Shown: piece after piece, positions 13,885 through 27,584 of the stretch
Layout: each line of letters begins with the position of its first letter
Numbering within the stretch: the first letter of the stretch is position 1
Source: Eutreptiella sp. 'Long Island Sound 2002'
Lineage: Eukaryota > Protista > Euglenida
Length of the DNA stretch: 64,000 nucleotides
Reading direction: 5' to 3'
Assembly: GCA_964036045.1 (NCBI GenBank)
Contig: OZ038378.1
Coordinates: 4,216,001-4,280,000 of the forward strand
The notes under the pieces: model-generated
What the model was told of the DNA's origin: nothing
Database searches by the model: none
Seen by the model: the letters and a program-made list of their open reading frames with translations, nothing else
Program-made: the position numbers and the translations under genes

Positions 13885-14220
13885 ATGCCTGAATCTGAGC
13901 TGCCCTGGCTTGTCGCCGGACTGCCTGTGTACTACCACTGCTCCAACGGGGATAGGGTGTCGGCCACTGTCGTTGACCCTTCTCCAAGAGGTGGGCGTCG
14001 CGTCTCTATTCGGTACGAATTGGGTGGTGAAGAGGTCTTGTACGAGCATGCACCCGAGGAGCGGTTGGAGTTTGCAATTGTGACTGCTGAGAGCCCCGAT
14101 TCCCCCAAACCTGTGCACCATGAGGCGCCGATGGACGCTTTGCTGGAGCCCCAATTACCTGAAGTGGAAACTAAAGCCCCTAGAATTGATGATCATGAGC
14201 CAGAATGCTGTGGCGGATGA
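13885..14220 (+). CDS. Small unknown ORF (111 aa) with a possible SH3/Tudor-like N-terminal beta domain
   Basis: The start context ccag-atccacaATG shares cacaATG with TPI. The sequence VYYHCSNGDRVSATVVD...VSIRYELGGEEVLYEHAPEERL suggests a beta barrel (inference only). Confidence 0.35.
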   Translation: MPESELPWLVAGLPVYYHCSNGDRVSATVVDPSPRGGRRVSIRYELGGEEVLYEHAPEERLEFAIVTAESPDSPKPVHHEAPMDALLEPQLPEVETKAPRIDDHEPECCGG

Positions 14221-14294
14221 AATTGAAATTCCCGTAACCCAACCAGTGTTGTCGCTTGTGTTGTCGCCTGTGCATGGTTTGTAACGGAGGTGCG

Positions 14295-14486
14295 TGCAAG
14301 GTGCAGAAATTGGGAGCCTGGAACCTGTGACAAGCATCAGATTCAAAAAAAAAATTCCCGGTACGCCAATAGGGGCTGCAGGGTGCAGAAAATAGGACCC
14401 TGGAACCTGTGACAAGCATCAGACTAAAAATTGAAGAATCCTGGTATGCCAGTATGGACTGCAAGGTGCAGAAATCAGGACCCTGG
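14295..14486. repeat. ~82-bp tandem repeat, about 2.3 copies
   Basis: tgca(a/g)ggtgcagaaa recurs at 14295, 14377 and 14460; ggaacctgtgacaagcatcaga occurs twice. Confidence 0.8.
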
Positions 14487-14545
14487 GTGTGTTTCTATGG
14501 GGGCCATTCAACGGGGTACAAGTTGGGCAACCATCCCAAAAACAT

Positions 14546-14589
14546 TGAACCGTGCGCGCACCGTGCGCGCACCGTGCGCGCACCGTGCG
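14546..14589. repeat. 11-mer array, right copy of the 44-bp direct repeat
   Basis: tgaaccgtgcgcgcaccgtgcgcgcaccgtgcgcgcaccgtgcg. Confidence 0.9.
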
Positions 14590-15437
14590 ACAACGCCCCC
14601 CACCTCCCGCCCCAAGTGAAGGAGGTCTCCCAGGGTCTACAGGGTCTACACTGGGACCTGCTCCTTAGGCAGGGGTGATGTAAGGGCGTTTGGAACGGGT
14701 GTGCTTGGGGGCTCTTCAGGGGGAACGTGGTCTAAAAAGTAGCGCGCAGTGCAAGGACGCCCCCCTAGACAAACAACACACCACTACAGCACACCAATAC
14801 GGCACCAGCATGGCAACCCTGTGCATTCTGGACCCTGAAAGTGGCTACTTCTGCCCGGATTGTGTAAGCTGGATCCGTCATATTTTGCTTCCCCTCCCCC
14901 AGTCCCCCGCCTGCCCCCCTAAGGGCGCCGGGCACGACCCTCTCGTGCCAGGCGTCTCGTGTGAAAACAATTTGTGCACGAAGGGAGAGCAACGGGAGTT
15001 CAGAGGCTGCCTCCTTCTCTTCCTTCTTCTCAGGATTGTGGGAAGTGTAGCATAGATGCGTCTACATCATGTGCGCAATCCACTTCGATTGCATTCAAGC
15101 TGGCCAGAAGCTGTCTGTGAGCGGGGGCATCAGCAGGCAACTATCATCTCAACGTCGCCTCTGCCCCTTGACACCAGCCTACCCCCAGCACACCCAGACC
15201 CTCTCTCGTGTTGGGGCTGCTGCAAAGTACACTCAGTCCTGGTTGGGTGTTGCCCCATCTTCCAGGCCCATGCACAGGGAGGAAGAGACTATGGCAGTGT
15301 AAGTGGCAGCTGCAATTTGCTCCAGTTGCGGTCAACCTGGTAAATGCAGACGTCCACGCCGGAAAGCTCCTGTGCTGCTTGCGCCATTTATGCAGTTGCA
15401 ATGTTTGCATTGTTGTTTGCCCTCCACGGCGTTTAGC

Positions 15438-18400
15438 ATGCAGGCTGTGCAATGTGCTGCCTTGTCTTTGACGCGGCTGGCCAACCTTGGGCGCTGCTAC
15501 TCTTCTGAGGCTCCCTATGGACTTCCAGGCACGGCACTTTACCTGGTACCCACCCCGATTGGACACCATCAGGACATCACATACCGCGCTGTGCGGGTGC
15601 TTGGGGCTGTGGATGCAGTGCTGGCGGAGGACACACGCACCGCACAGCGCCTCCTGGCGCGATACGGCATTCACACACCTCTAGTGCAGTACCACAATGC
15701 CAATGAGCACCGCACTGTCAGCCAGCTGGTGAAGCGCATGATGACGGGACAAACTTTGGCATTGGTGTCTGACGCGGGTACACCATGCGTCTCAGACCCA
15801 GGTGTGAAGCTTGTGTATGGATTTGCATGCATCTTGCATGCTGCTACAAGATCACAACAACACAGACAACCCCAGGTGCAGCTCAGGCAATTGGCGTGTT
15901 GTATGCAAGGGTTTTACCAGGGACAAGGGGGGCGCACCGTGCGCTGTGCCTGCGTTGTGTGAAAAGTAGGCTGTTTAGGACCCATTTTCCGCAGTGGCCA
16001 AGGTGACGCAGTAACTATTGTGTTCCCGCACACAGGTTTACTCAGGTTTTTATTCAGTCCAAAAACTCAGATAATGAGTTGTAACAAACGATGTCTCCCG
16101 CTAAAAATGCCAGATTGCTATCGAAATCTGCTGTTTTGCTTTGTGGACGTAGCTCCCCTCGTGGTGGGTGGTTTTCAGGGTGGTCACAGGAAAGCTTACT
16201 TACAATTGGGCGCTGCGCCTGCGCTGCTCCCGTGCTGTGCAGAAACGCCCCCCAAGGCTTTCCTTTTTTATTTTCAGTCAAAGAAAGTCCAGACATGTGG
16301 TGTCGTGATTGGCGGTCAACCGCTGGTGCTTGATGGTCAACGGCTGTGGTCAACTGCCGCTTGATTTTTGGCGCTTGACGGCACCTGTATCTGGCTGGTG
16401 AGGCCGGGGATAGGCCCTTGTGTGCCGGATCTTCTGTAAGGGGGTTTGGGGGGGGGATTCCATCCACACAGTTTTTTGCCTCGCATTCAGTACCGAGGCC
16501 AAACTGAATTTCTTGACACCCAACCCTTAAAAACTTGGGTGCCCTCATATTAAGGTACGTAACTCTGGCATGAGCAACCAGAACAAAAACTTTGCTGCGG
16601 TGGTTACACCGTTAATGCCCTGCTAGTCATAATGCCATGGGTCCATGTGATTTTCTGGAGCAAAAAGGGTGGGGATGGCCAGGCCAGGTCCTGGTATGTG
16701 CCCCCCCCCCCCCCCTCCCCAAGGATTCCTAGTGAAAAGGGAAATAAAACCTTACTTTCACAAGCTTGGTGACCCAAGTTCTAGAACACTGACCATAGGG
16801 TTCGGGGTTAGTGGCACGCTCATGGGAAAACAAGGCAGAACACACAGACAGTTTCCTGCTATGCAAGCGACAAAAGCATAAATTTGCCTTTAGCATACAG
16901 TAAACTTCAGCCAGCCCTTGATGTGGGGAAATGAGTTGAAATGTGAAATACAATTCAAATGTGTTTTTCTCGTGTAGTTGAATTCCACATTTAATCCTGT
17001 ATCCTGGGCATTTTGAGTAAACACGAGTGAGATGAAACTGGAAACTTAGCTTGTGCAATGGGCACAAAATTTTTTTTGCAAAAAAAACTATGGCGCCATT
17101 AGCACTTTCACCTTGATGGTGGAACCAAAAGGTTTTGCAACCCTTTTGCCTGAGCTGGTGGAAGCAGCAAGGCATTTTAACCCTCTTCACTAAGCTAGTG
17201 GAACCAGTGAGGTTGTTTTACCCTCTTGACGGGACAAGGTGGGGCTACCCTTTGCAGCAGCAGCAACAAACAACAGCAGCAGCAGCAACAAGCAGCAAGC
17301 CCCCCCCCCACCCCGGAGACCGTCACGTGGCCCAAATAAGCACAGAAAATATTAGGCGCCGAAGAAAAATTTTCCTTAGCTTTTTCTAGAATTCGGGGGG
17401 GGGAGACCGTCACTTGGTGACCCCCCCTCCCCCCCCCCCCGGAGAACGTCGTGTGCTAGGGGGGGGGGGATTGCAAGGGGGGACGGGGTAGCAGCAAGCA
17501 CACACGAAATGGGCAAAAAAACAGAATTCACTGTGCTGGTTGGTTTTTGCCGAAATTTTGCTGATTGTTAACGATGAGTATAAAGTTGAGGTTGGACGGA
17601 ATGAACCGGCGGTACCCTCGGCGGCGGTTCGGCTCGGCCGGTTAGGTTCCGGCGGTTCGGCTCGGCGGCGGTGTCGGCCGGCCGATTCGGCCGGCCGGAC
17701 CGCCGGGCGGCACTTCGGCCGGCCGAGTCGGCCGGCCGGACCGCCGGAACCTACCCGGCCGGCGGTCCGGCCGGCCGAACCACCGCCCGGCAGTCCGGCC
17801 GGCCGAACCGCCGGGCCGTTCCGACGCACCCCCCCACCACCCCCCAAGGATCCCGGGTTAGGCACCCTTTTTGTTCACCCACCTACACCCATTGGGGACC
17901 GCGAATGCAACGGTCCTAGGAGCATCATGGTGTCCTGTTCAATGTTCATGTTCAATGCAATCGTCAGCCCGCGGACAAGGGGCCCCTGGCGCGGGATGCT
18001 GCCACCCACATTGAGCATTGTGTCCGATCCATCTACTCCTCAAGCGGAGCCGCTAGCCTTGCTAGCGGTGCCCCACTCAGCAATGAGTGTGGGCGCAGCG
18101 TGGAACCGCGTGGCCACCAGCGTTTGGTGGCCCGTTGTGGAAACCCGGGAGTGGAATTGCGGTACACAATGTGAAATGTGGGGTGTTTCACTTGTTTGTT
18201 TGCTTCACAACCCCATATAGGCCAGTATTGTTGCACCCCTTGAGTTGGGGTTAGGGACTCACAATCCACGCTTTCTGGCGTGGCCCCTCGAGTTGCGGTT
18301 AGGGACTCCGAGAACCTTCCGGTGCTATTGAGCAAACCGGGCTAGTCTTTACGTTATTACGTACAATGGATCACGTTCCTTCTACGTTTCGTTTTGGTGT

Positions 18401-21400
18401 TGGTACATGTCATGTGTGCCGTGAAGTACTTCCTCTCTTTTTCCTTTTTTTTTTACATAAGTCGTTCAAGGGGCGGTTCCCCTTCGCAAAAGCATTCCCA
18501 ACACAGTGCCCAAACCCAAACTTGTGAGTGCCCAAACCGAAACCACCAAAAGCAGACGCCGCAGAGCGATGGGAGTAGGCACCCAGGGCAGGATTCGCCG
18601 CAGAGCAACGGGAGTAGGCACTGTGTTGGTTGGTACCCTAAAAGTGACAAATTGTGTGCACAGCCGTCGATGTCTCTCAATTTGCAATGGTGAGGCCTCT
18701 GTGAAAATACATTGCGTTTCCTTTAACAGTTTCCTTTAACAGTTCAAATGCCTCATCGGGTCACTGTCCCTATTGATACCACCACCTCCACGGGTGTGCA
18801 GCAATACGCTTGCCGCGATTGCGATGATTGCCCGGGCAAACACTACGTTTGTGACGGTTGTGGGAAAGTTACAAAGAAGCCAGATCACATGGTTTCACAC
18901 CTGGTTATGTGCCGGCGGAAAAAGGCCCTTGGGGGTGTTGCGCCTGATGCTGAACAAGTAGAGGCCCGCGCTGCCGCCGGTGAGCAGCCCGCAGTACGCA
19001 ATCGCAACTCTCCTCACTTGGGGTCTCAACAGTACTTTGGGTGGGTTGTGAAGGATGAAAATGGGACCATGTCGTCATGGCGTCCGGTGACCAGTCGGTG
19101 CCCAGGGTCACTGTATGAACCCGCGGGTATTCCTTGTTGCACATGGAATCTCCAGGGTACAACAACTTGTACAGTGTTGACAAAGACGGGTCCGCAAGTA
19201 TACAACATCCAACGGTATTTCTGTTCAACTCCCGGACATATGCAGGAGGCTGTTCCTGAAGACGGTGCTAAGCGCCCACAGGCCGATGACGCACGCTTCC
19301 GGGACGAGGTTGTTAGCCGGGATGACGTCTTTCCAACTACCCTAGTGTTCAAGATTGGGAGAACAACAATGACGGGCGACCTGTTGTCCTGGTTTTGGGG
19401 TTCTGCCTGGGGCACATATGCTTCCGTTACTGATTTACGCCGCTTCATGTTCTTCATGTGGCATTCACATTTGGAAAATCATATGTTCAATGTTCATGAT
19501 GCGGCCCTACCAGAGTTGATCACCCGGTCCGAGCTTTTGGAGGACAAAATCCCTGACATTAAAACAATGCGGCGTATGCTCTATGCCATTTGATCCGTAC
19601 GATACAGGGATACCCACATTGTGCACGATTCCGTACTTGATGATGAGGCCGGAATTCTCCATTGGGATTTCACGTATCAGGCTGTGGCTAACATCTTCGT
19701 GCAACATAATGGGAAACTTGTTGAGTTGGCTTACGTTCTGGGCACCCTTTTGGGTTCTCGTGGCCTTGTGTTGGGTAGCATTATAGCCCCCACAGAGAAG
19801 TGGTCCTATATGGAACAGTGTTTGTGCCCTATTTTCCAACGTTTCACCCGCGCGCCTGAACAGCTTTGGGTTGATGATTATCAAAAATGGTCTCAAAAGT
19901 TGTACGCCTTGTTACGACAAGTTTTTGGGCCAGATTGTCCAACGAAGGTTGGCCAAGATTGGCGGCATTTTAAGGAGATCATGATAGCTCCAGCAGACCA
20001 TCGCAGTCAAGATTATCCTAGGTTTAAGAGGAAGGTAGAGGGTTTGCTGCGTCGCATCCGCCTCCCTGATGAGGCTCAAAATGCAATTGCAACTCCAGCC
20101 CAGCTGCGCGCTGCTTTGAAGGATATTTATGATCGTTTTCAACACCCCCTAGGTGGGGCTATTGGCGGTGCCGACCGCCGGGCGGCACTTCGGCCGGCCG
20201 AGTCGGCCGGCTGGACCGCCGGAACCTACCCGGTCTGCAGTTCGGCCGGCCGGACCTCCGCCGGTACCTACCAGGCCGGCGGTCCGGCCGGCCGGCCGGC
20301 CGGCCGAACCGCCGCCCGGCGGTGTCGGCCAAATTTTCGGCCAAAATCCTCCGCGGCGGTCTCGGCCGGCCGGACCGCCGCCCGGCGGTTCGGCCGGCCG
20401 AGTCGGCCGGCCGAACCGCCGCCGAGTTTTTCGGCCGAGGACCGCCGCCGAGCCCCACCGCCGTTTCATTCCGATGAGCTTAAAGTTGAATTGCACCATG
20501 TTTGAGCAAACCTCGACTGTGGCAGCTGGCTACTGCCCTGCAAGTGCAAGTGGTGGTTCACAAAACTGTTGAAAATCGTCAAAAAAAACGGCCATTACCG
20601 CTGAAACCAAGCCATATGGTAGAAAAACAATTTGGGGCACTGTTTGCTATCTTTTTTTTTGCCCAACTAGCGGATGCCAGGAGTTGGGGGCAGGTGGCTT
20701 TGGGGTCTGAACCTGGGACTTCCTTGGCTTTGCTTTGGTTTTTCAAATTTTCCGAACTTGAAGTGTGGTTTGTGCACTGTCACTATTATTGTTGGTAATG
20801 GCAAATCCATGGCTGGGCTTGTGTCCAAGCGTGGGGTCAAGGAAGGGGGCCTCTTTCGCAGTGCCTTTTCGTAGGCAATCCCATCATGTCCAAGCACCAA
20901 CACTTGAAGCATCCTGCAACCTGGCGCAGCATGCTGTGGCGCTCAATTGTTGGGCCTGTTGGTGCGAGTTTTGAAGCATGCCATACATAGCATGCTGCAG
21001 CATGCCACAGCACCCTGTAGTTGCCACACTGTACTTGCTAAGTACAAGCTGGTACGTTGACTGCACAACTGCAGCACCACTTGCACATCAAGGGTGGACT
21101 TGGTGCGCAAGAAATTCAACAATGTATACCAGGGAAAAATGCAAAAGGCCGTGGAATGTTTCAACCCCAAGCTGCTAGTGGGTGGGTCCCTGAACCCACC
21201 CAGAGCTGGCCTACTGCTTGCCTACCTGCTTGCTGTGTTGGTGTATGTCTTACACTTTGTTTGCATATGTATGTGTCATAGCTCTCATCCCTTGCCCCTT
21301 GCCATCTGATTGCCTTGTGTATGCGAAACACAGGGTGTGTGTTGGGGAAGGGCGTGACATGCCGGTGAGTGCAGGGAGAGGCCCACCCTGACCAACACTA

Positions 21401-24048
21401 CATGATGCCCCTGCCAGACCCACCACGACCAAATGATGGCCATTCCCCTATTCCGTTCCGTAGGCTTCGCATTGGTGCAGGCATGCCACAGGGAGAACCT
21501 CCAAGTGGAGTGCCTGCCAGGCCCGACGGCCTTTGTACCGGCGCTGGTCAACTCTGGCCTTCCAATGCACAAATTCGTGTTCGAGGGGTTCCTGCCCACA
21601 AAGAGTCGGAAGAAGGCACTGAAGGCTGTGGCCGAGGAAACCCGGTGTGTGCCCCTGGCCAATGCCCGAGTCCTGGTGCTCAACTGGACATTGCATTTGA
21701 GTGTCCCATTCATAACATTCTTGGCACGGTTGCCTGGAACGGTTGTCTGATGAGCGCTGTTCCCGATGTCAGTCTGCGCTGGTTGTTGGATTGCTGTTCC
21801 TGAAATGTCCATAGGCAGAATGCGCATTCGCCAGTTGTGCTTCAGTGTCTCCACTGTGACCCAGAGTAGATCTCTTCATTTGTGTGTTTGGGCGTACTCA
21901 GGCTACACAACGTTTACGCTCACAACAAACCCCCCTTGCTCTCACACATGCTCGCACAGGGGCATTCCCAAGTGCATCTCTGGGATCCCCCACACGGATT
22001 GGGAGTGGTACATTGTGCTGCCAGTGCCCAATCCACTGCCAACAACACTTTCTGGGCATGTCGGGTTTTCACTTGCGGGGGGGGGGGGGGTCAATAGAGC
22101 CGGGGGGGGGGGGGGGTTCAGGAACAGGGCTCAGTTGACAGGCACCATTTATCAGTTATTAAGAACTCTGGTGCCGAAGGCGCCGAATTTTTTTTGAGCA
22201 AATTGGTCAATTTTTTCCCCACCAAATATATGGCAAATGATGACTTTTCTGAACCCCTCCAAGTGTTGATTCCAAAAATCCCATTTTCATTTTTTGCTGA
22301 TTTTTAGGTTTGTGTCACCTCCGAGGCCCGGGGTCAGTCTCAGTAGGATTCTGGGGGTCTCGTCAATTGAGCCCTTTTTGTGGGGGGGGGGGCGTCCCGC
22401 CGGAGGGCTTCATCGACCCCCCCCCGCAAACGAAAACCCTGCCTCCCCTGTAAGAGTTGCATGGTGGGAGGTCAAATCTGCAGATTTTCTGGCATCATTC
22501 TCCCCTGCGCGTTTTTCATTTGGGCCCCCTGTCTGCATGTCATGCGAAAAGGGCATTTAGTTTAGTGGGGCGCATTTGTACGCATGATCGCCTGCATATG
22601 AAAAATGCTACGCTGCGCCATTTGGCAATGATTTATATCAACAAAAATGGACAAAAAGCAAAACTGTGATGAGAAGGAGGACCAACACGCAGAGCTGTGC
22701 ATGTTTTCTACTGTGTTGAGTACTTGCAGATGGTTGGGATGCGCGTTTCTGGTGCCCCTGTCATTTTGCACAAGTGATCTACCCCTGCGCGCCTCTGCGT
22801 GAGACTTTGTGCACCCTTTTGAATACGAACCCAGGCTGTACAAAAGGACGACGGATGGTATGGGCGCGTTCGTCCAACAATGGCATTCGTGGGCGTGTCC
22901 CCCCCCCCCACATGACACCAGCGTTGGTCGCGATGTGCGCAGTGCTTGTGTGTGCACGAGGCGTTGCAATGTATTTGTGGTGCAGCATGTGGCCTGGGGC
23001 AGTACAACCGGCGAGAGGGCAGAGGGCCAGGTGTAGCAGGACGGAGTCTGACGGTCCCATCGCAAGCCCCCGCAGTGATAGTGCACCACTGCTCTGTGAC
23101 ACAGGCAGTACAGCGTTGTGTGGGGGGAATACCGTGGTGCGTGGGGCATTTGTGGGGGACCCTGAAGGTAACGTGCGGCCTCTGCCTCGGAGGCACCGGC
23201 TGCTCTGGACAGTGTTTGCAGTGCTATCCACCGCCGATGTGGGGTCTGTGACACAGTGCCAAGGGGTTGCTGGTCACCAAGTGCTGCCCATCGGTGGTGC
23301 TCAGCAACACAATTGAAAGCCCAGACAAAGATGGGCCAATTTTATCAAGTTCTCCATGCCGGGCTACCTGCCCAAATCACTGGGAGTATGGCAGATTCCC
23401 CCAACAGACCCCCAACACCCGTCCCACAACAAAGACTAGGCATGTGATGGTGACCGCCCGATGCCTCATGATACTCTACATGACTGTAATTGGACTGGCT
23501 GGCATCGCAGACCAAGCGTTTCACCCCCCCTCCCTCTCCTCCCCGTTGCCAGGACCGTGGTCCTGTATGAGTCCTGCCACCGTCTTGTGCGCACCCTCGC
23601 GGACCTGGTGGCGTGTTGCGGGCCTCAGCGGTCGGCATCCGTTTCCGGGGAACTCACGAAAGTGCACGAGAGAACGGTGCGTGGCCCCCTGTCCGAGCTG
23701 CACCGGCACTTTGCCGCAAACGCGGTCCGTGGCGAGTTTGTGATCGTTGTGCACGGGCACGGTCCTCGTGCGGACCCCAACCGGCGCGCGGCCCGTCCCT
23801 CGTTGTTGAAGGATCTGTTGCGGAAGGCGGCGGTGGAAAGGCTCCCCACTCCTTCCAAAGGCCCCACCCGGACGCCGGAAGCGGGAAAGGTCCGGCCCCG
23901 TCGCCGGGGCCCGGGGGGGCGGCGGGGCGCGCTGCGCCGTGCCATGTCGACCACCCGATGGAAACGGTTGGTGGTGCTGTGTGCCAAACAGATGCGGGGC
24001 ATTCCATCGGGTTCCGGAACGGACTGTGCGGGCGTTTCCAGGGATTAA
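15438..24048 (+). CDS. rsmI: RsmI-family rRNA small-subunit 2'-O-methyltransferase, ~346 aa: exons 15438-15801, 21464-21644, 23553-24048; predicted mitochondrial presequence
   Basis: The spliced product reads LYLVPTPIG..DIT.RA..VL..VDAVLAEDTR...ALVSDAGTPCVSDP-G-FALVQAC...LPGPTAFVPALVNSGLP...FEGFLP...EET-R-TVVLYES.HRL...ELTKVHE...RGEFVIVV. Splices are G|gtgtga..ag|GC (phase 1) and CG|gtgtgt..ag|G (phase 2), and both restore the frame. The start ATG is inferred from tttag-c-ATG; an upstream in-frame ATG also exists at 15390. Confidence 0.9.
17590..20480 (+). mobile_element. Mutator-like (MULE) DNA transposon, internally deleted and non-autonomous, inside rsmI intron 1
   Basis: A perfect 9-bp TSD TAAAGTTGA lies at 17581-17589 and 20481-20489. 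The inverted termini cggaatgaaccggcggt (17597-17613) and accgccgtttcattccg (20457-20473) each sit 7 nt inside the TSD. Subterminal arrays are GC-rich GGCCGGCC repeats, and there is an internal DDE-type ORF. Confidence 0.8.
18748..20170 (+). pseudogene. Transposase pseudogene: N-terminal zinc finger plus D..D..DxxH core, one in-frame TGA (19591-19593), C-terminus (catalytic E) missing
   Basis: ORFs 18748-19593 and 19621-20505 are in the same frame and separated only by one TGA. Motifs are YVCDGCGKVTKKPDHMVSHLVMC (C-x2-C-x12-H-x3-C), HWDFTY (D at 19666), WVDD (D at 19873, 69 aa later) and QDWRH (DxxH at 19957). The frame runs into the GC repeat at ~20170. Confidence 0.7.
23175..23502. repeat. 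Dispersed repeat family; other copies at ~2866-3066 and ~26100-26297
   Basis: The shared block caacacaattgaaagcccagacaaagatgggcca.ttttatcaag...gtaattggactggctggc is in the same orientation in each copy. Confidence 0.85.
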
Positions 24049-24360
24049 CGTGAAGGCTGCACTTGCGGCGGGTTGGGCATCGCCTGCACACCCCCTTCGC
24101 ACTGGGGCTGCCCAGTGGGCAGAGGGGCTACCCTTCAATAAGCAACACCAGGCAGCAAGAGCCTCCCCTAGCGAGTGGTGGGTGCCTTGGGTTGGCGCGG
24201 TGTCAGCTGGAGCTACTGATGGCTGGCACACATTCTGAATCCATCGTTCGGCACAGCAGGTGTGTTCTGGGACATCACCGAGGACTGACCGCGGCGGATT
24301 GTCTGTCACCTCTCGTGTACTCATGGACCGCATTGGGGCGACCACGCATGCGTTTGGCCT

Positions 24361-24854
24361 GACCAGGGATGCGTCCTGCGCTCCTGGTCTGCTGAACCGC
24401 AGCAGCTGCGTTTTGTACTTGATGACCAACACTGTGCAGTTGTACATCCCTTTCGGCCTTGTCTAAGCACGGGGTGGGGTCGCGCATGGAAGGTGAGTGA
24501 CGAGCATACCAGAAAGTGCACGGGGGCCGGGCCCCGCAGTGCGCTCCGTCATCGCGGCTCGTGGAGGCCACGGCGCCGACGATCATGAACAGCTGCTGCT
24601 CTTGTACGACCAGGGATGCGTCCTGCGCTCTTGGTCTGCTGAACCGCAGCAGCTGCGTTTTGTACTTGATGACCAACACTGTGCAGTTGTACATCCCTTT
24701 CGGCCTTGTCTAAGCACGGGGTGGGGTCGCGCATGGAAGGTGAGTGACGAGCATACCAGAAAGTGCACGGGGGCCGGGCCCCGCAGTGCGCTCCGTCATC
24801 GCGGCTCGTGGAGGCCACGGCGCCGACGATCATGAACAGCTGCTGCTCTTGTAC
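24361..24854. repeat. Near-perfect 247-bp tandem duplication
   Basis: 24361-24607 and 24608-24854 differ at about one position (gctcctgg versus gctcttgg). Confidence 0.92.
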
Positions 24855-27584
24855 GGCCGCTGCAGATAAGGTGACAGCAGCGATGTAGACAGTGGGGTGT
24901 AGGGGGGTGGGGTGGATGACAATTATTTAACCACATCGGTAGCGTAGTGTACTGGAAGTGCACGGGGGCCTCGTCCCGGAGAGCGTAGGATCAATGCCCG
25001 GCGTGTAGATCATGGTGCCGACGGGCATGACACAGCTCTTTTGAGGGGGTACTCTTTTTCGTGAGCCTGAGTGGCAACAAGACCCTATCCAACAGGGAGG
25101 TAGGGGCAATGCACGTGATGTGCGCGCACACGAGAGGGCCTTTCTGGACTCATGAGCGCGGCTTCGCCGCTTATGGACAATTTGTGGCCGCGGCTCTGCC
25201 GCGTGTGCTGGACACGAGAACAGTGATTTCCTACTGGTGGGATACCGGGGGTGACGGCCATCGTCGGATTATGGCTAAGCACGGGGTGGGCGTTGAACTG
25301 CCGTTTTGACCCGAATTTTGGGACTACGGCCGTGCTTGCGCACGGGGGAGGGGGGTACCAAAAATTGTGTTCTTTGTTCAGTTGGTGTTGTTTGACGAAG
25401 CTCCAAGGGCCAAGCGAAGAAGTGGGTGGGTGGAAGGTCTTCCAACGCTTCCTGACTGGTTTATTTCTCTCACCTGCCTCCCATGTTTCCGGATTTCAAC
25501 ACATGATGGACTGTTGGAGGCACTGTCCAGCGGGGGAAAGGAGCACCTACAAGCCCTAAGAAACAGTCAGGTTTTTTGAAGCCCAATGGGGTGTTGCCTC
25601 CCACGCCCAATGCATTTCCCCTGCCCAAAAAGATTTGGTCTTTCAGTCGTCCCCGCAACAAGTGTCGTGCCATTTCGAGCCGTCTAGCCCATTCTGTGGC
25701 CGATTTAGTCTCCAAAAATGGCCGTTTTTAGCCTGTTTTCAGGACGATCGCCGTGAAAGTTCAGGACGATCGCCGATGCGTCAAGTGGGTGTCTCCAATG
25801 AGGACCGTTCTTCTTCCATAGCGATTGGGCGATCAAATGATCAACCCGCGTATCAAACAATGTTGCGCAACCCCTTGTCGCTGATGATTGAGGAAATGCC
25901 GGAGGGGCTCCAACATTAGAGGCAACACGGACTTAAAGGCCCTCGTGGTCGCCGGTCCACACATGATACAGTGGGGCTGATTGACATTGATCATATCTTG
26001 GATGCTCAGAGGGGCGAAGCCCCCCTCTGCAAGCACACTCACACCCCTCTTGAAAAGCAAAAGAAGTCTCTGGACTCCAAACACTGCGATTAGAGGCAGT
26101 GTGCAGCCTCTGCCTTGGAGGCACCAGCTGCTCTGGACAGCGTTTGCAGTGCTATCCACCGCCGATGTGCAGTCTGTGACACAGGGCCAAGGGGTTGCTG
26201 GTCACCAAGTGCTGCCCATCGGTGGTGCACAGCAACACAATTGAAAGCCCAGACAAAGATGGGCCAATTTTATCAAGGTCTCCATACTGGGCTACATGGG
26301 TTGGAAACCACACACCCTGCACATGTCACGTCTAACAGCTGGTTGGCTCGATCCAGATCCAAAGGGCTTGTCTGCATCAGATGCAGAACGGCTTCATCTT
26401 GAGAAACCTTCATGTTGAAAAAAAAAAGACCAATACAAAAGTGGATGGTGTGTGAACCATGCTCGTGTTTGCCTCAGGACACACAGTGCGCTTTTCAGGA
26501 CAATTGCAATCCAGTTTGAGCAGTGCAAAAAAGATGTTAAAAGTTGCAAACGTGCAGAAGAAGTTCACAATGCATTTTTTACCAGACAGGTGCAAAAAAA
26601 CAGAATGCGTGTATGCGCATCCAAGGCTTTGACCCCTGGAATTCGGTTTCATGTCAGTGTGCAACGGCACATCGGTTGTCTGTGCTACATCGGTAGGCTA
26701 CATTGCCTTCACTGCCACTAACCACACCTCTCTGCCTCTCGCTGGTTTTGGTGGTGCCATTTTTTGCAATTTGGGTGGTGGCTGCAGGTGCTGGTTGTGC
26801 CAGGGGAGTCAAGTAGCAGGCCATGTAAATCAGAGAAAGGTTTATTTTCAATACCAAATGACTGCCCAGGGTTTATTTTTGGTGTGGCTGCTTTCCATGC
26901 CTCATGGTACTTCGAACTCTGACTGCAACCATCCCACTCAGTCTTCACCCTTGATCAGTCTCGGGGGCAGGGGAGGGTGGGGGCATGGCAACTGTCATTT
27001 CGGTTTTTTTAGTTTTTGGAGCTTCGGTTGGGTTTGAGGGCCTGCTTGTTTTTTTTTTGTTTTTTTTTTCCAAAGATAGTATCTGCTGATTTGATGTCAC
27101 ATCACTCTTTCTAATGGGCTGAATTTTGGACAACTCTTGGCAACATTCCCTTCATATTGTACAAAACGCTTCATGCAAATTTGCACATGCATGTTGATCA
27201 AAGTTTACGAGGTATTTATGTTAATTTCACCCTTCTTTACAACAACATGTGCCCATTGAAAACGATTTCGTTCTCAACCCGGGTCTGTTTAAATAGGGCA
27301 AGAGTAACCCCAACGGAAGCTTCAAATTGTGTTTCAACAAATAAACCCAACCCACAAATGTGCCAAGTTTGCGATATCTTCTTTGAGAGTAGGGGCCTGA
27401 TTAGAAATGGGCCAGCTTGACCATGGGTACCGCCATATTGGGCACCGCGGGAGGGCCTTGCCTGCAGCCTAAAAGGGAGTGTTAGTGCGCACGGCGCGCG
27501 GAGGGCAACTTTTTGGGCTATTTTCGATTCCCAACCCTGTTTTTGGCGTCGGCTAGGTGAGTGGGTGGGCTTTTTGCATGGGCT

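Follow-up and report, generated by a model that had tools for sequence, protein, structure and literature searches.

The RsmI gene and its exon-intron structure

The stretch of DNA that we have analysed, hereafter the window, comprises 64,000 nucleotides (nt) of the genome of the euglenid Eutreptiella sp. 'Long Island Sound 2002' (GenBank assembly GCA_964036045.1, contig OZ038378.1, positions 4,216,001 to 4,280,000; the coordinates below are those of the window), and it contains on its forward strand a gene of the RsmI family of ribosomal RNA (rRNA) methyltransferases that is divided into three exons (Table 1). The joined exons form a frame of 1041 nt with zero internal stops, which encodes a protein of 346 residues that we refer to as “window RsmI”; its N-terminus reads MQAVQCAALSLTRLANLGRCYSSE, and the motifs EDTRT, NEHRTV, LPGPTAFVPALVNSGLP and SVSGELTKVHERTVRG are all found in it. 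An earlier, sequence-only reading of the window had given the coordinates of this gene, its leader peptide and its family motifs, all of which have proved correct when the sequence was re-read and the joined translation was made.

The exon boundaries are as follows, with a slash marking each junction: exon 1 ends at the donor G/gtgtga, its final base being the first base of the codon of G122; exon 2 lies between the acceptor ccgtag/G and the donor CG/gtgtgt; exon 3 follows the acceptor ttgccag/G, and is closed by the stop codon TAA at 24046-24048.

Table 1. Features of the RsmI gene in the window. Residue numbers are those of window RsmI; K+R, lysine plus arginine.
Feature	Coordinates	Strand	Basis or remark
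RsmI gene	15438-24048	+	three exons; both introns GT..AG
Candidate acceptor, for a spliced leader or for cis-splicing: pyrimidine-rich run, then tttag/c, one base 5' of the ATG	15416-15437	+	putative, from reading of the sequence
Exon 1: leader (residues 1 to ~30) and RsmI N-terminal domain, including E64, D112 and D120	15438-15801	+	TIGR00096; RNA contig; ATG at 15438
Predicted presequence, residues 1-21, R19-C20-Y21/S22	15438-15500	+	cleavage site by pattern match alone
Intron 1, 5662 nt, GT..AG, with a transposon-like insert and an abundant short repeat	15802-21463	+	DNA contigs compared with the RNA contig at the donor
Exon 2: completes the N-terminal domain and opens the core domain (LPGPTAFVPALVNSGLP, FEGFLP)	21464-21644	+	TIGR00096; gap-free alignment to the Euglena gracilis protein
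Intron 2, 1908 nt, GT..AG	21645-23552	+	sequence and frame
Exon 3, core part (YESCHRL ... GEFVIVV)	23553-23760	+	TIGR00096
Exon 3, lineage-specific basic tail of 96 residues (25 K+R), with the stop codon	23761-24048	+	sits at the place expected for RsmI_C; composition

Expression and splicing

The splicing of the gene has been explored through the comparison of RNA and DNA contigs over positions 15000-20999, a range that ends before intron 2 and the 3' end of the gene. The single RNA data set with the locus is an estuary metatranscriptome, whose contig of 330 nt lies on 15572-15802 with 0 differences, while its remaining 99 letters are absent from the intron; DNA contigs from three runs of the organism, on the other hand, pass unbroken through the donor (15000-15952). 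The RNA contig reaches one base past exon 1 because exon 2 also begins with G. Since the RNA contig departs from the intron where the DNA contigs continue, there is a transcript whose match to the genome stops precisely at the predicted donor. Of the splicing that had been proposed from the sequence, the use of the first donor is thus borne out by the estuary contig, while the proposed site of leader addition lies outside its cover.

Both junctions are further supported by the transcript-derived Euglena gracilis protein EG_transcript_16038 (P0002, from EukProt), which is collinear with window RsmI and aligns gap-free over both of them (SDPG-FALVQAC and E-x-R-TVVLYES). A degenerate pattern for the junction peptide DPGFALVQAC has retrieved 7 matches from metagenomes, all of them high-GC bacterial rsmI genes at 44-50% identity, with no spliced euglenid mRNA among them.

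It could be argued that the locus is non-functional, i.e. that it stems from bacterial contamination or faulty assembly, or is a pseudogene in decay, given that its expression in the species depends on one metatranscriptome contig of 330 nt. Against this stand the GT-AG introns of 5.7 and 1.9 kb with their host repeats, the DNA contigs of three runs that are continuous from the flank into exon 1, the intact frame with its catalytic residues kept, the expressed orthologue in E. gracilis, and the RNA contig that leaves the genome at the donor; we regard a non-functional locus as having next to no probability. A bacterial contaminant, in particular, is rejected on account of the introns with their host repeats and of the continuity of the DNA contigs. 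That the window carries a real, spliced RsmI gene is, in our judgement, close to certain.

Family membership and catalytic residues

The sequence-only reading had proposed that the complete RsmI core is spread over the three exons; in agreement with this, the exons match the NCBIfam model TIGR00096 (275 positions) collinearly and cover its positions 2-91, 94-152 and 155-232, with E-values of 1e-27, 8e-15 and 2e-11, well outside chance expectation, and scores of 97.1, 55 and 43.7 bits. The simple sum of the scores (195.8 bits) lies above the cut-off of the model (167.9 bits), and is a rough figure because the exons were scanned apart. The exons also match the Pfam family PF00590 (TP_methylase), and the E. 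gracilis protein matches the structure 5HW4 with an E-value of 5e-58.

For the comparison of conserved positions, we have used 48 alignment columns whose conservation among 91 bacterial RsmI rows reaches 93% or more: window RsmI keeps 45 of them and the E. gracilis protein 46. The departures of window RsmI are the replacement of N by H and of L by H in PIGNL, and of R by G in SRELTK. The residues that coordinate Mg2+ in E. coli RsmI (E44, D92 and D100; PMC13037946) correspond in the alignment to E64, D112 and D120 of window RsmI, where all three are present. The core identity between the two euglenid proteins is 65% and the catalytic residues are retained; this indicates purifying selection. 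Window RsmI is predicted, by homology, to form 2'-O-methylcytidine (Cm) at the equivalent of C1402 on the assembled small subunit.

Two replacements at near-invariant sites are common to both euglenid proteins: PIGN is PIGH, and S-R-ELTK is S-G/A-ELTK. These common replacements support common descent of the euglenid pair as judged by alignment, with some room for altered properties.

The C-terminal region

In E. coli RsmI, the C-terminal 42 residues fold into a domain of three helices, which binds h23b of the rRNA, and the deletion of this domain abolishes activity (PMC13037946). The corresponding Pfam family, RsmI_C (PF23016), has given no match in exon 3 and the tail of window RsmI. The nearest Bacteroidota RsmI proteins are likewise without RsmI_C; for this reason, RsmI_C does not define the whole family, and window RsmI belongs to its short-form subtype.

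At the place where RsmI_C would be expected, both euglenid proteins end in a long, basic tail that is rich in proline and glycine, of 96 residues in window RsmI (25 K+R) and of 68 residues in the E. gracilis protein (14 K+R); an alignment of one tail with the other is possible but weak. From its position and composition, we infer that the basic tail may be an added RNA-binding anchor.

Bacterial affinity of the gene

The search for relatives of exon 1 among 5.8 billion proteins has returned, after its own open reading frame and the E. gracilis protein (70% identity), named matches that all belong to Bacteroidota (54-67% identity), including Hymenobacter, Cyclobacteriaceae, Flavobacteriaceae, Chryseotalea and Maribacter. 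With the full E. gracilis protein as the query of a word-index search, the named matches are again Bacteroidota, at 57-65% identity over the whole core. When 1.84 billion cluster representatives are scanned exhaustively, the E. gracilis protein is the sole member of its own 50% cluster and no nearer eukaryotic cluster is found; the ranking continues with short-form proteins at 55-57% identity, and the others reach at most about 50%.

The best 80 loci from a scan of 185,579 species of the GTDB are Bacteroidota in 79 cases, the remainder being a metagenome-assembled genome (MAG) labelled Janthinobacterium. The rsmI gene on this contig of the Janthinobacterium lividum MAG (locus L055) is sister, in a quick tree, to that of a Mucilaginibacter MAG within Bacteroidota, with a support of 98 in the Shimodaira-Hasegawa-like approximate likelihood ratio test (SH-aLRT); the contig is probably mis-binned rather than the result of a transfer. 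Identity of the E. gracilis core to proteins of Alphaproteobacteria, Gammaproteobacteria, Bacillota and Actinomycetota is 39-49% (tblastn). Mean identity is 53-55% to Bacteroidota versus 41-44% to Alpha- and Gammaproteobacteria.

A maximum-likelihood tree has been calculated from 94 rows and 234 columns, under the LG+C20 model with posterior mean site frequencies (PMSF) and without cyanobacterial, plant or green-algal rows. Window RsmI and the E. gracilis protein are sisters (support 100/99), and the pair groups with a protein from a Flavobacteriales MAG (P0152; 97/87), whose rsmI gene has an ordinary Bacteroidota context that includes the gene of a type IX secretion tail protein. The clade that contains the euglenid pair (66 rows, 98/91) includes all 47 Bacteroidota loci and zero outgroup rows. 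The claim that the gene is closer to RsmI of Bacteroidetes than to alphaproteobacterial RsmI, which had been made from sequence motifs, is hence upheld by the searches across the databases, by this clade and by the p-value of an alphaproteobacterial placement in the approximately unbiased test (p-AU 0.043).

The same tree also holds results that speak for more caution about the origin. A tree in which the pair is constrained to group with five Alphaproteobacteria is worse by 67.5 log-likelihood units, but the p-AU of 0.043 makes this a borderline rejection. When the 64 bacterial rows of the clade are constrained together, with the euglenids outside, the likelihood is 5.4 units better (p-AU 0.56); the robust label is therefore “Bacteroidota-type” and not “nested in Flavobacteriales”. 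Moreover, because cyanobacterial and plant rows are not part of the tree, an origin from the plastid lineage is excluded by the ranking of matches alone.

These results are the ones that would favour a gene obtained from the plastid donor (a green alga or a cyanobacterium) or from the mitochondrial ancestor, with a superficial likeness to Bacteroidota: the tree is without cyanobacterial, plant and green-algal RsmI, its test against Alphaproteobacteria is borderline, and its constraints allow the pair to lie beside Bacteroidota as well as within it. Such descent would nevertheless have to account for the named top matches of both word-index searches and 79 of the best 80 GTDB loci being Bacteroidota, for the short form of the representatives at 55-57% identity, with all others at about 50% or below, for the 98/91 clade, and for the characters that euglenids have in common with Bacteroidota, i.e. 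a one-residue gap in FEGFLPxK-KGR and the lack of RsmI_C; we consider it highly unlikely. The simplest reading is that the gene was acquired horizontally from a bacterium, and a bacterial origin of Bacteroidota type is one that we hold with good confidence. Transfers from Bacteroidetes-like donors to Euglena have precedents for other genes (e.g. PMC5827456).

Some further observations were made among the bacterial relatives. An ENA metagenome contig of 2241 nt encodes a protein of 345 residues (P0243) with a thymidine-kinase-like N-terminal part, joined to a Bacteroidota-type RsmI that is without its own N-terminus; the two parts may be truly fused, or the protein may come from chimeric gene calling. 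The Flavobacteriales MAG, too, has a gene for thymidine kinase near rsmI, ~2 kb upstream and on the other strand. A search of plasmids returned no cyanobacterial or plant RsmI. Among its matches, resistance plasmids of Enterobacteriaceae (H94-H100) carry an RsmI-like N-terminal fragment of 62 residues, 53% identical to long-form RsmI, which directly adjoins the aminoglycoside-resistance methyltransferase gene rmtG and looks like a remnant of the former chromosomal neighbourhood of that gene.

The leader and the predicted address of the protein

The leader of window RsmI extends ~27 residues beyond the bacterial start, and contains R13 and R19. As had been stated in the sequence-only reading, no acidic residue precedes the R-C-Y/S-S site: the first acidic residue is E24, and the motif is found as R19-C20-Y21/S22-S23. 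The highest hydrophobic moment within the leader is 0.54, at LTRLANLGRCY. The E. gracilis protein begins with MRAALAAVGRR.

As the criterion for a signal-peptide-like segment, we have used a window of 15 residues with a mean hydropathy of at least 2.0. The maximum is 1.07 in the leader of window RsmI and 0.95 in that of the E. gracilis protein, versus 2.31 in the plastid-type euglenid RsmI that is described in the next section; there is thus no signal-peptide-like hydrophobic segment in either of the two short leaders. In Euglena, a signal peptide stands at the start of plastid presequences of either class, I or II (PMC2920757), and the canonical plastid route is therefore unlikely for both proteins. 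The short leader suggests, without proving it, a mitochondrial function.

The proteome tables of the Euglena organelles count neither way: EG_transcript_16038 and RsmI-like names have not been found in the searched parts of the mitochondrial tables (PMC7403612), nor in the searched parts of the tables of the plastid proteome preprint (10.1101/573709).

A second RsmI in euglenids

The search of the representatives has also revealed a second euglenid RsmI (P0265/P0399), encoded at loci L092 and L093, which are metatranscriptome and Logan contigs (L093:1-440). The L093 mRNA contig begins with gtgtctattttttttcg, which we take to be a remnant (the 3' portion) of the spliced leader of euglenids and which assigns the gene to a euglenid. 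From the first ATG onwards, the contig encodes a presequence of 134 residues, composed of a signal peptide, a stretch rich in serine and threonine, a second hydrophobic segment ~60 residues further on, and then RRRSR; this is the layout of the class I plastid type, as defined in PMC2920757. The protein is of the long form, with RsmI_C, is 47% identical to window RsmI, and has its nearest relatives not in cyanobacteria but in Gammaproteobacteria (e.g. Thiohalobacter, Competibacter and Microbulbifer; 53-60% identity).

Judged by its presequence, then, a dedicated plastid RsmI exists in euglenids, and this makes the mitochondrion the most likely home of the short-form enzyme with the short leader.

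The competing proposal, that the enzyme of bacterial origin works in the plastid, on C1402 of the chloroplast 16S rRNA, would need an unrecognised upstream exon or a non-canonical import route. It gains from the plastid 16S rRNA being the most bacterial-like substrate in the cell, from a 5' end that is not covered by RNA, where the AG at 15436 might just as well serve in cis-splicing, and from the fact that no plastid-type RsmI of E. gracilis was found in EukProt. It is opposed by the lack of a signal-peptide-like segment in both short-form euglenid proteins, which class I and class II presequences both have at their start (PMC2920757), by the separate euglenid RsmI that bears a class I presequence, and by the failure to find the protein in the searched parts of the plastid proteome tables; we judge a plastid site of action to be quite unlikely. 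A mitochondrial site of action is the best single reading, and we regard it as evenly balanced between right and wrong.

Taken together, euglenids may possess two foreign RsmI enzymes, each acquired on its own: a long form of Gammaproteobacteria type directed to the plastid, and a short form of Bacteroidota type, with its tail as a substitute rRNA anchor, directed to the mitochondrion, neither of them inherited from the ancestor of the organelle in which it would act, and with the mitochondrial small-subunit (SSU) rRNA bearing a mark of the Cm1402 type. This combined picture is put forward tentatively, and we are rather doubtful that it holds in all of its parts.

Other elements of the locus

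Upstream of the RsmI ATG, an out-of-frame open reading frame of 11 codons occupies 15401-15436, and its stop codon overlaps the candidate AG for leader addition. The search of the window for the spliced-leader sequence has yielded zero copies. No RNA family was found by an Rfam scan of 14000-25500, and a Pfam scan of the antisense open reading frame over exon 3 gave no match.

Intron 1 contains a transposon-like insert at ~17590-20480, which is multi-copy in the DNA runs and is bordered by GGCCGGCC-rich arrays (17617-17814 and 20216-20295); its two open reading frames, of 281 and 294 residues, have no Pfam match at an E-value of 0.01. The repeat at 18236-18310 in the same intron consists of two units of ~38 nt and has no Rfam match. 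Its word depth in the DNA runs is 1.4-4.5 million, versus ~6-22 in the single-copy flanks, and is very high in the RNA run as well; the many joints that go back by 33-42 letters show tandem arrays of this repeat elsewhere in the genome. About 300 nt 3' of the RsmI stop codon, a unit of 247 nt is repeated 2.0 times with 99% identity (24361-24855).

The proposed pathway and the evidence for and against it

The explanation that we favour is as follows. An ancestor of at least two euglenids would have taken up the gene from a bacterium with an RsmI of the Bacteroidota-type short form, and after the transfer two spliceosomal introns would have entered the gene, while its product would have been extended by a short leader at the N-terminus and a basic tail at the C-terminus. 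The mRNA would be spliced, with a spliced leader probably added just 5' of the ATG, and the leader peptide would direct the precursor into the mitochondrion, where it would be cut near residue 21. The target of the mature dimer would be the cytidine that corresponds to C1402, in the decoding centre of the split SSU rRNA of the mitochondrion, and its methylation would take place late in the assembly of the subunit. The mitochondrial SSU rRNA of Euglena consists of two pieces (PMC4700960), and the proposed substrate is SSU-R, the 3' piece; the basic tail would replace the rRNA-anchoring role of the E. coli C-terminal domain. Taken as a whole, i.e. a nuclear euglenid RsmI of Bacteroidota type that acts in the mitochondrion, we consider this explanation to stand at the midpoint between belief and disbelief.

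A number of points weigh against it. With regard to the 5' end, the RNA contig starts at 15572, so that the ATG and the leader-addition site are without RNA cover, and direct RNA support in the species is restricted to 15572-15802, with the acceptor of intron 1, the whole of intron 2 and both ends of the gene lying beyond it. A further ATG occurs in frame at 15390, 16 codons 5' of the ATG at 15438, and there are several AG dinucleotides upstream; owing to these and to the missing RNA cover, the N-terminus of window RsmI is a predicted one, and an upstream exon is possible. With regard to the leader itself, two basic residues alone make it weakly basic, and the R-x-Y/S pattern is short, its chance occurrence in a leader of 30 residues being in the order of a few percent by a rough estimate. 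The E. gracilis protein was not met with in the searched parts of the mitochondrial proteome tables. The argument by elimination is indirect, because the two RsmI genes have not been seen in one species, and the EukProt search has given no E. gracilis match to the plastid-type RsmI. Finally, given the replaced near-invariant residues and the lack of the C-terminal domain, the activity or the substrate could differ from those of bacterial RsmI.

The last of these points leads to another possibility, namely that the enzyme is cytosolic or nuclear, or has shifted to another RNA target, with its terminal additions as adaptations to the new role. The replacement of two near-invariant family residues in both euglenids would fit such a shift, as would the loss of a domain that is essential in E. 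coli together with the gain of a long tail rich in arginine and lysine, the weakly basic leader, and the absence of the protein from the searched parts of the organelle proteome tables. However, the retention of the Mg2+ ligands and of 45-46 of the 48 conserved columns at 65% identity argues for selection on the ancestral activity, and Bacteroidota themselves use a form without the C-terminal domain. The ribose methylation of cytosolic rRNA in eukaryotes is, furthermore, guided by snoRNAs. We find a cytosolic or retargeted enzyme unlikely.

Comparison with known systems

With E. coli RsmI (YraL; structures 5HW4 and 9PZG), window RsmI has in common the two-domain catalytic body, which resembles tetrapyrrole methylases, and the conserved Mg2+ ligands; by homology, it is expected to be dimeric, to depend on S-adenosylmethionine (SAM) and to act on the assembled small subunit. 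The euglenid proteins differ from it in sequence (~43-47% identity) and in the absence of the C-terminal domain of 42 residues, while window RsmI has in addition a leader and a basic tail of 96 residues, and is encoded by an intron-bearing, eukaryotic nuclear gene.

The short-form RsmI proteins of Bacteroidota, e.g. those of the Flavobacteriales MAG (P0152) and of a member of Cyclobacteriaceae (locus L001), are the nearest relatives by every search, at 57-67% identity; they match PF00590 without RsmI_C, and have both the motif VECLPGxTAFVPALV and the one-residue gap in FEGFLPxK-KGR in common with the euglenids. Unlike the euglenid proteins, they are 220-250 residues long, with no leader, tail or introns, and the euglenid proteins differ from them in having H for N in PIGN and G or A for R in S-R-ELTK.

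EG_transcript_16038, an unnamed protein of EukProt for which our search has given neither a functional annotation nor a publication, is the closest counterpart. Its core is 65% identical to that of window RsmI (by BLASTP, 62% over 260 aligned residues). The two proteins agree in the residues at the junctions and in both derived substitutions, and each has a basic tail and a leader that is short and non-hydrophobic, although in sequence the leaders and tails are for the most part no longer alike. EG_transcript_16038 is the orthologue from another species, or else a paralogue. The second euglenid RsmI (P0265/P0399) belongs to the same family and the same group of organisms, but differs from window RsmI in its RsmI_C domain, its affinity to Gammaproteobacteria and its class I presequence.

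Among other eukaryotes, Arabidopsis AT1G45110 (a putative RsmI), CMAL and METTL15 are comparable cases, in which the nucleus encodes an enzyme for the C1402 equivalent of an organellar SSU rRNA (PMC7102989; PMC7379855). CMAL, in plastids, and METTL15, in mammalian mitochondria, are N4-methylases of the RsmH type and not RsmI; the localisation and activity of AT1G45110 are unsettled (PMC7102989), and the 2'-O-methylation of the C1402-equivalent cytidine is not conserved in human mitochondria (PMC7379855).

Significance

To our knowledge, the methylation that RsmI makes at the P-site of the decoding centre is the sole ribose methylation to be conserved in the small subunit of bacteria. The kind of enzyme and the process by which the gene was obtained, i.e. 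the transfer of bacterial genes into Euglena, are both known; in our literature search, we have found no published description of the window RsmI gene, or of a euglenid or mitochondrial RsmI. What goes beyond the ordinary is the possible deployment in the mitochondrion, along with the presence in euglenids of two RsmI genes of different bacterial affinity and with different predicted addresses.

If window RsmI is plastidial or cytosolic, it is one more bacterial gene in a lineage that is already known for many. If it is mitochondrial, the fine-tuning of an organellar ribosome can be re-equipped by horizontal transfer and not by endosymbiont inheritance, and the enzyme would serve as a natural experiment on the recognition of an SSU rRNA that is both split and highly reduced by an RsmI that lacks the C-terminal domain. 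The euglenid pair of RsmI genes offers, in addition, a clean test case for how transferred genes gain organelle addresses.

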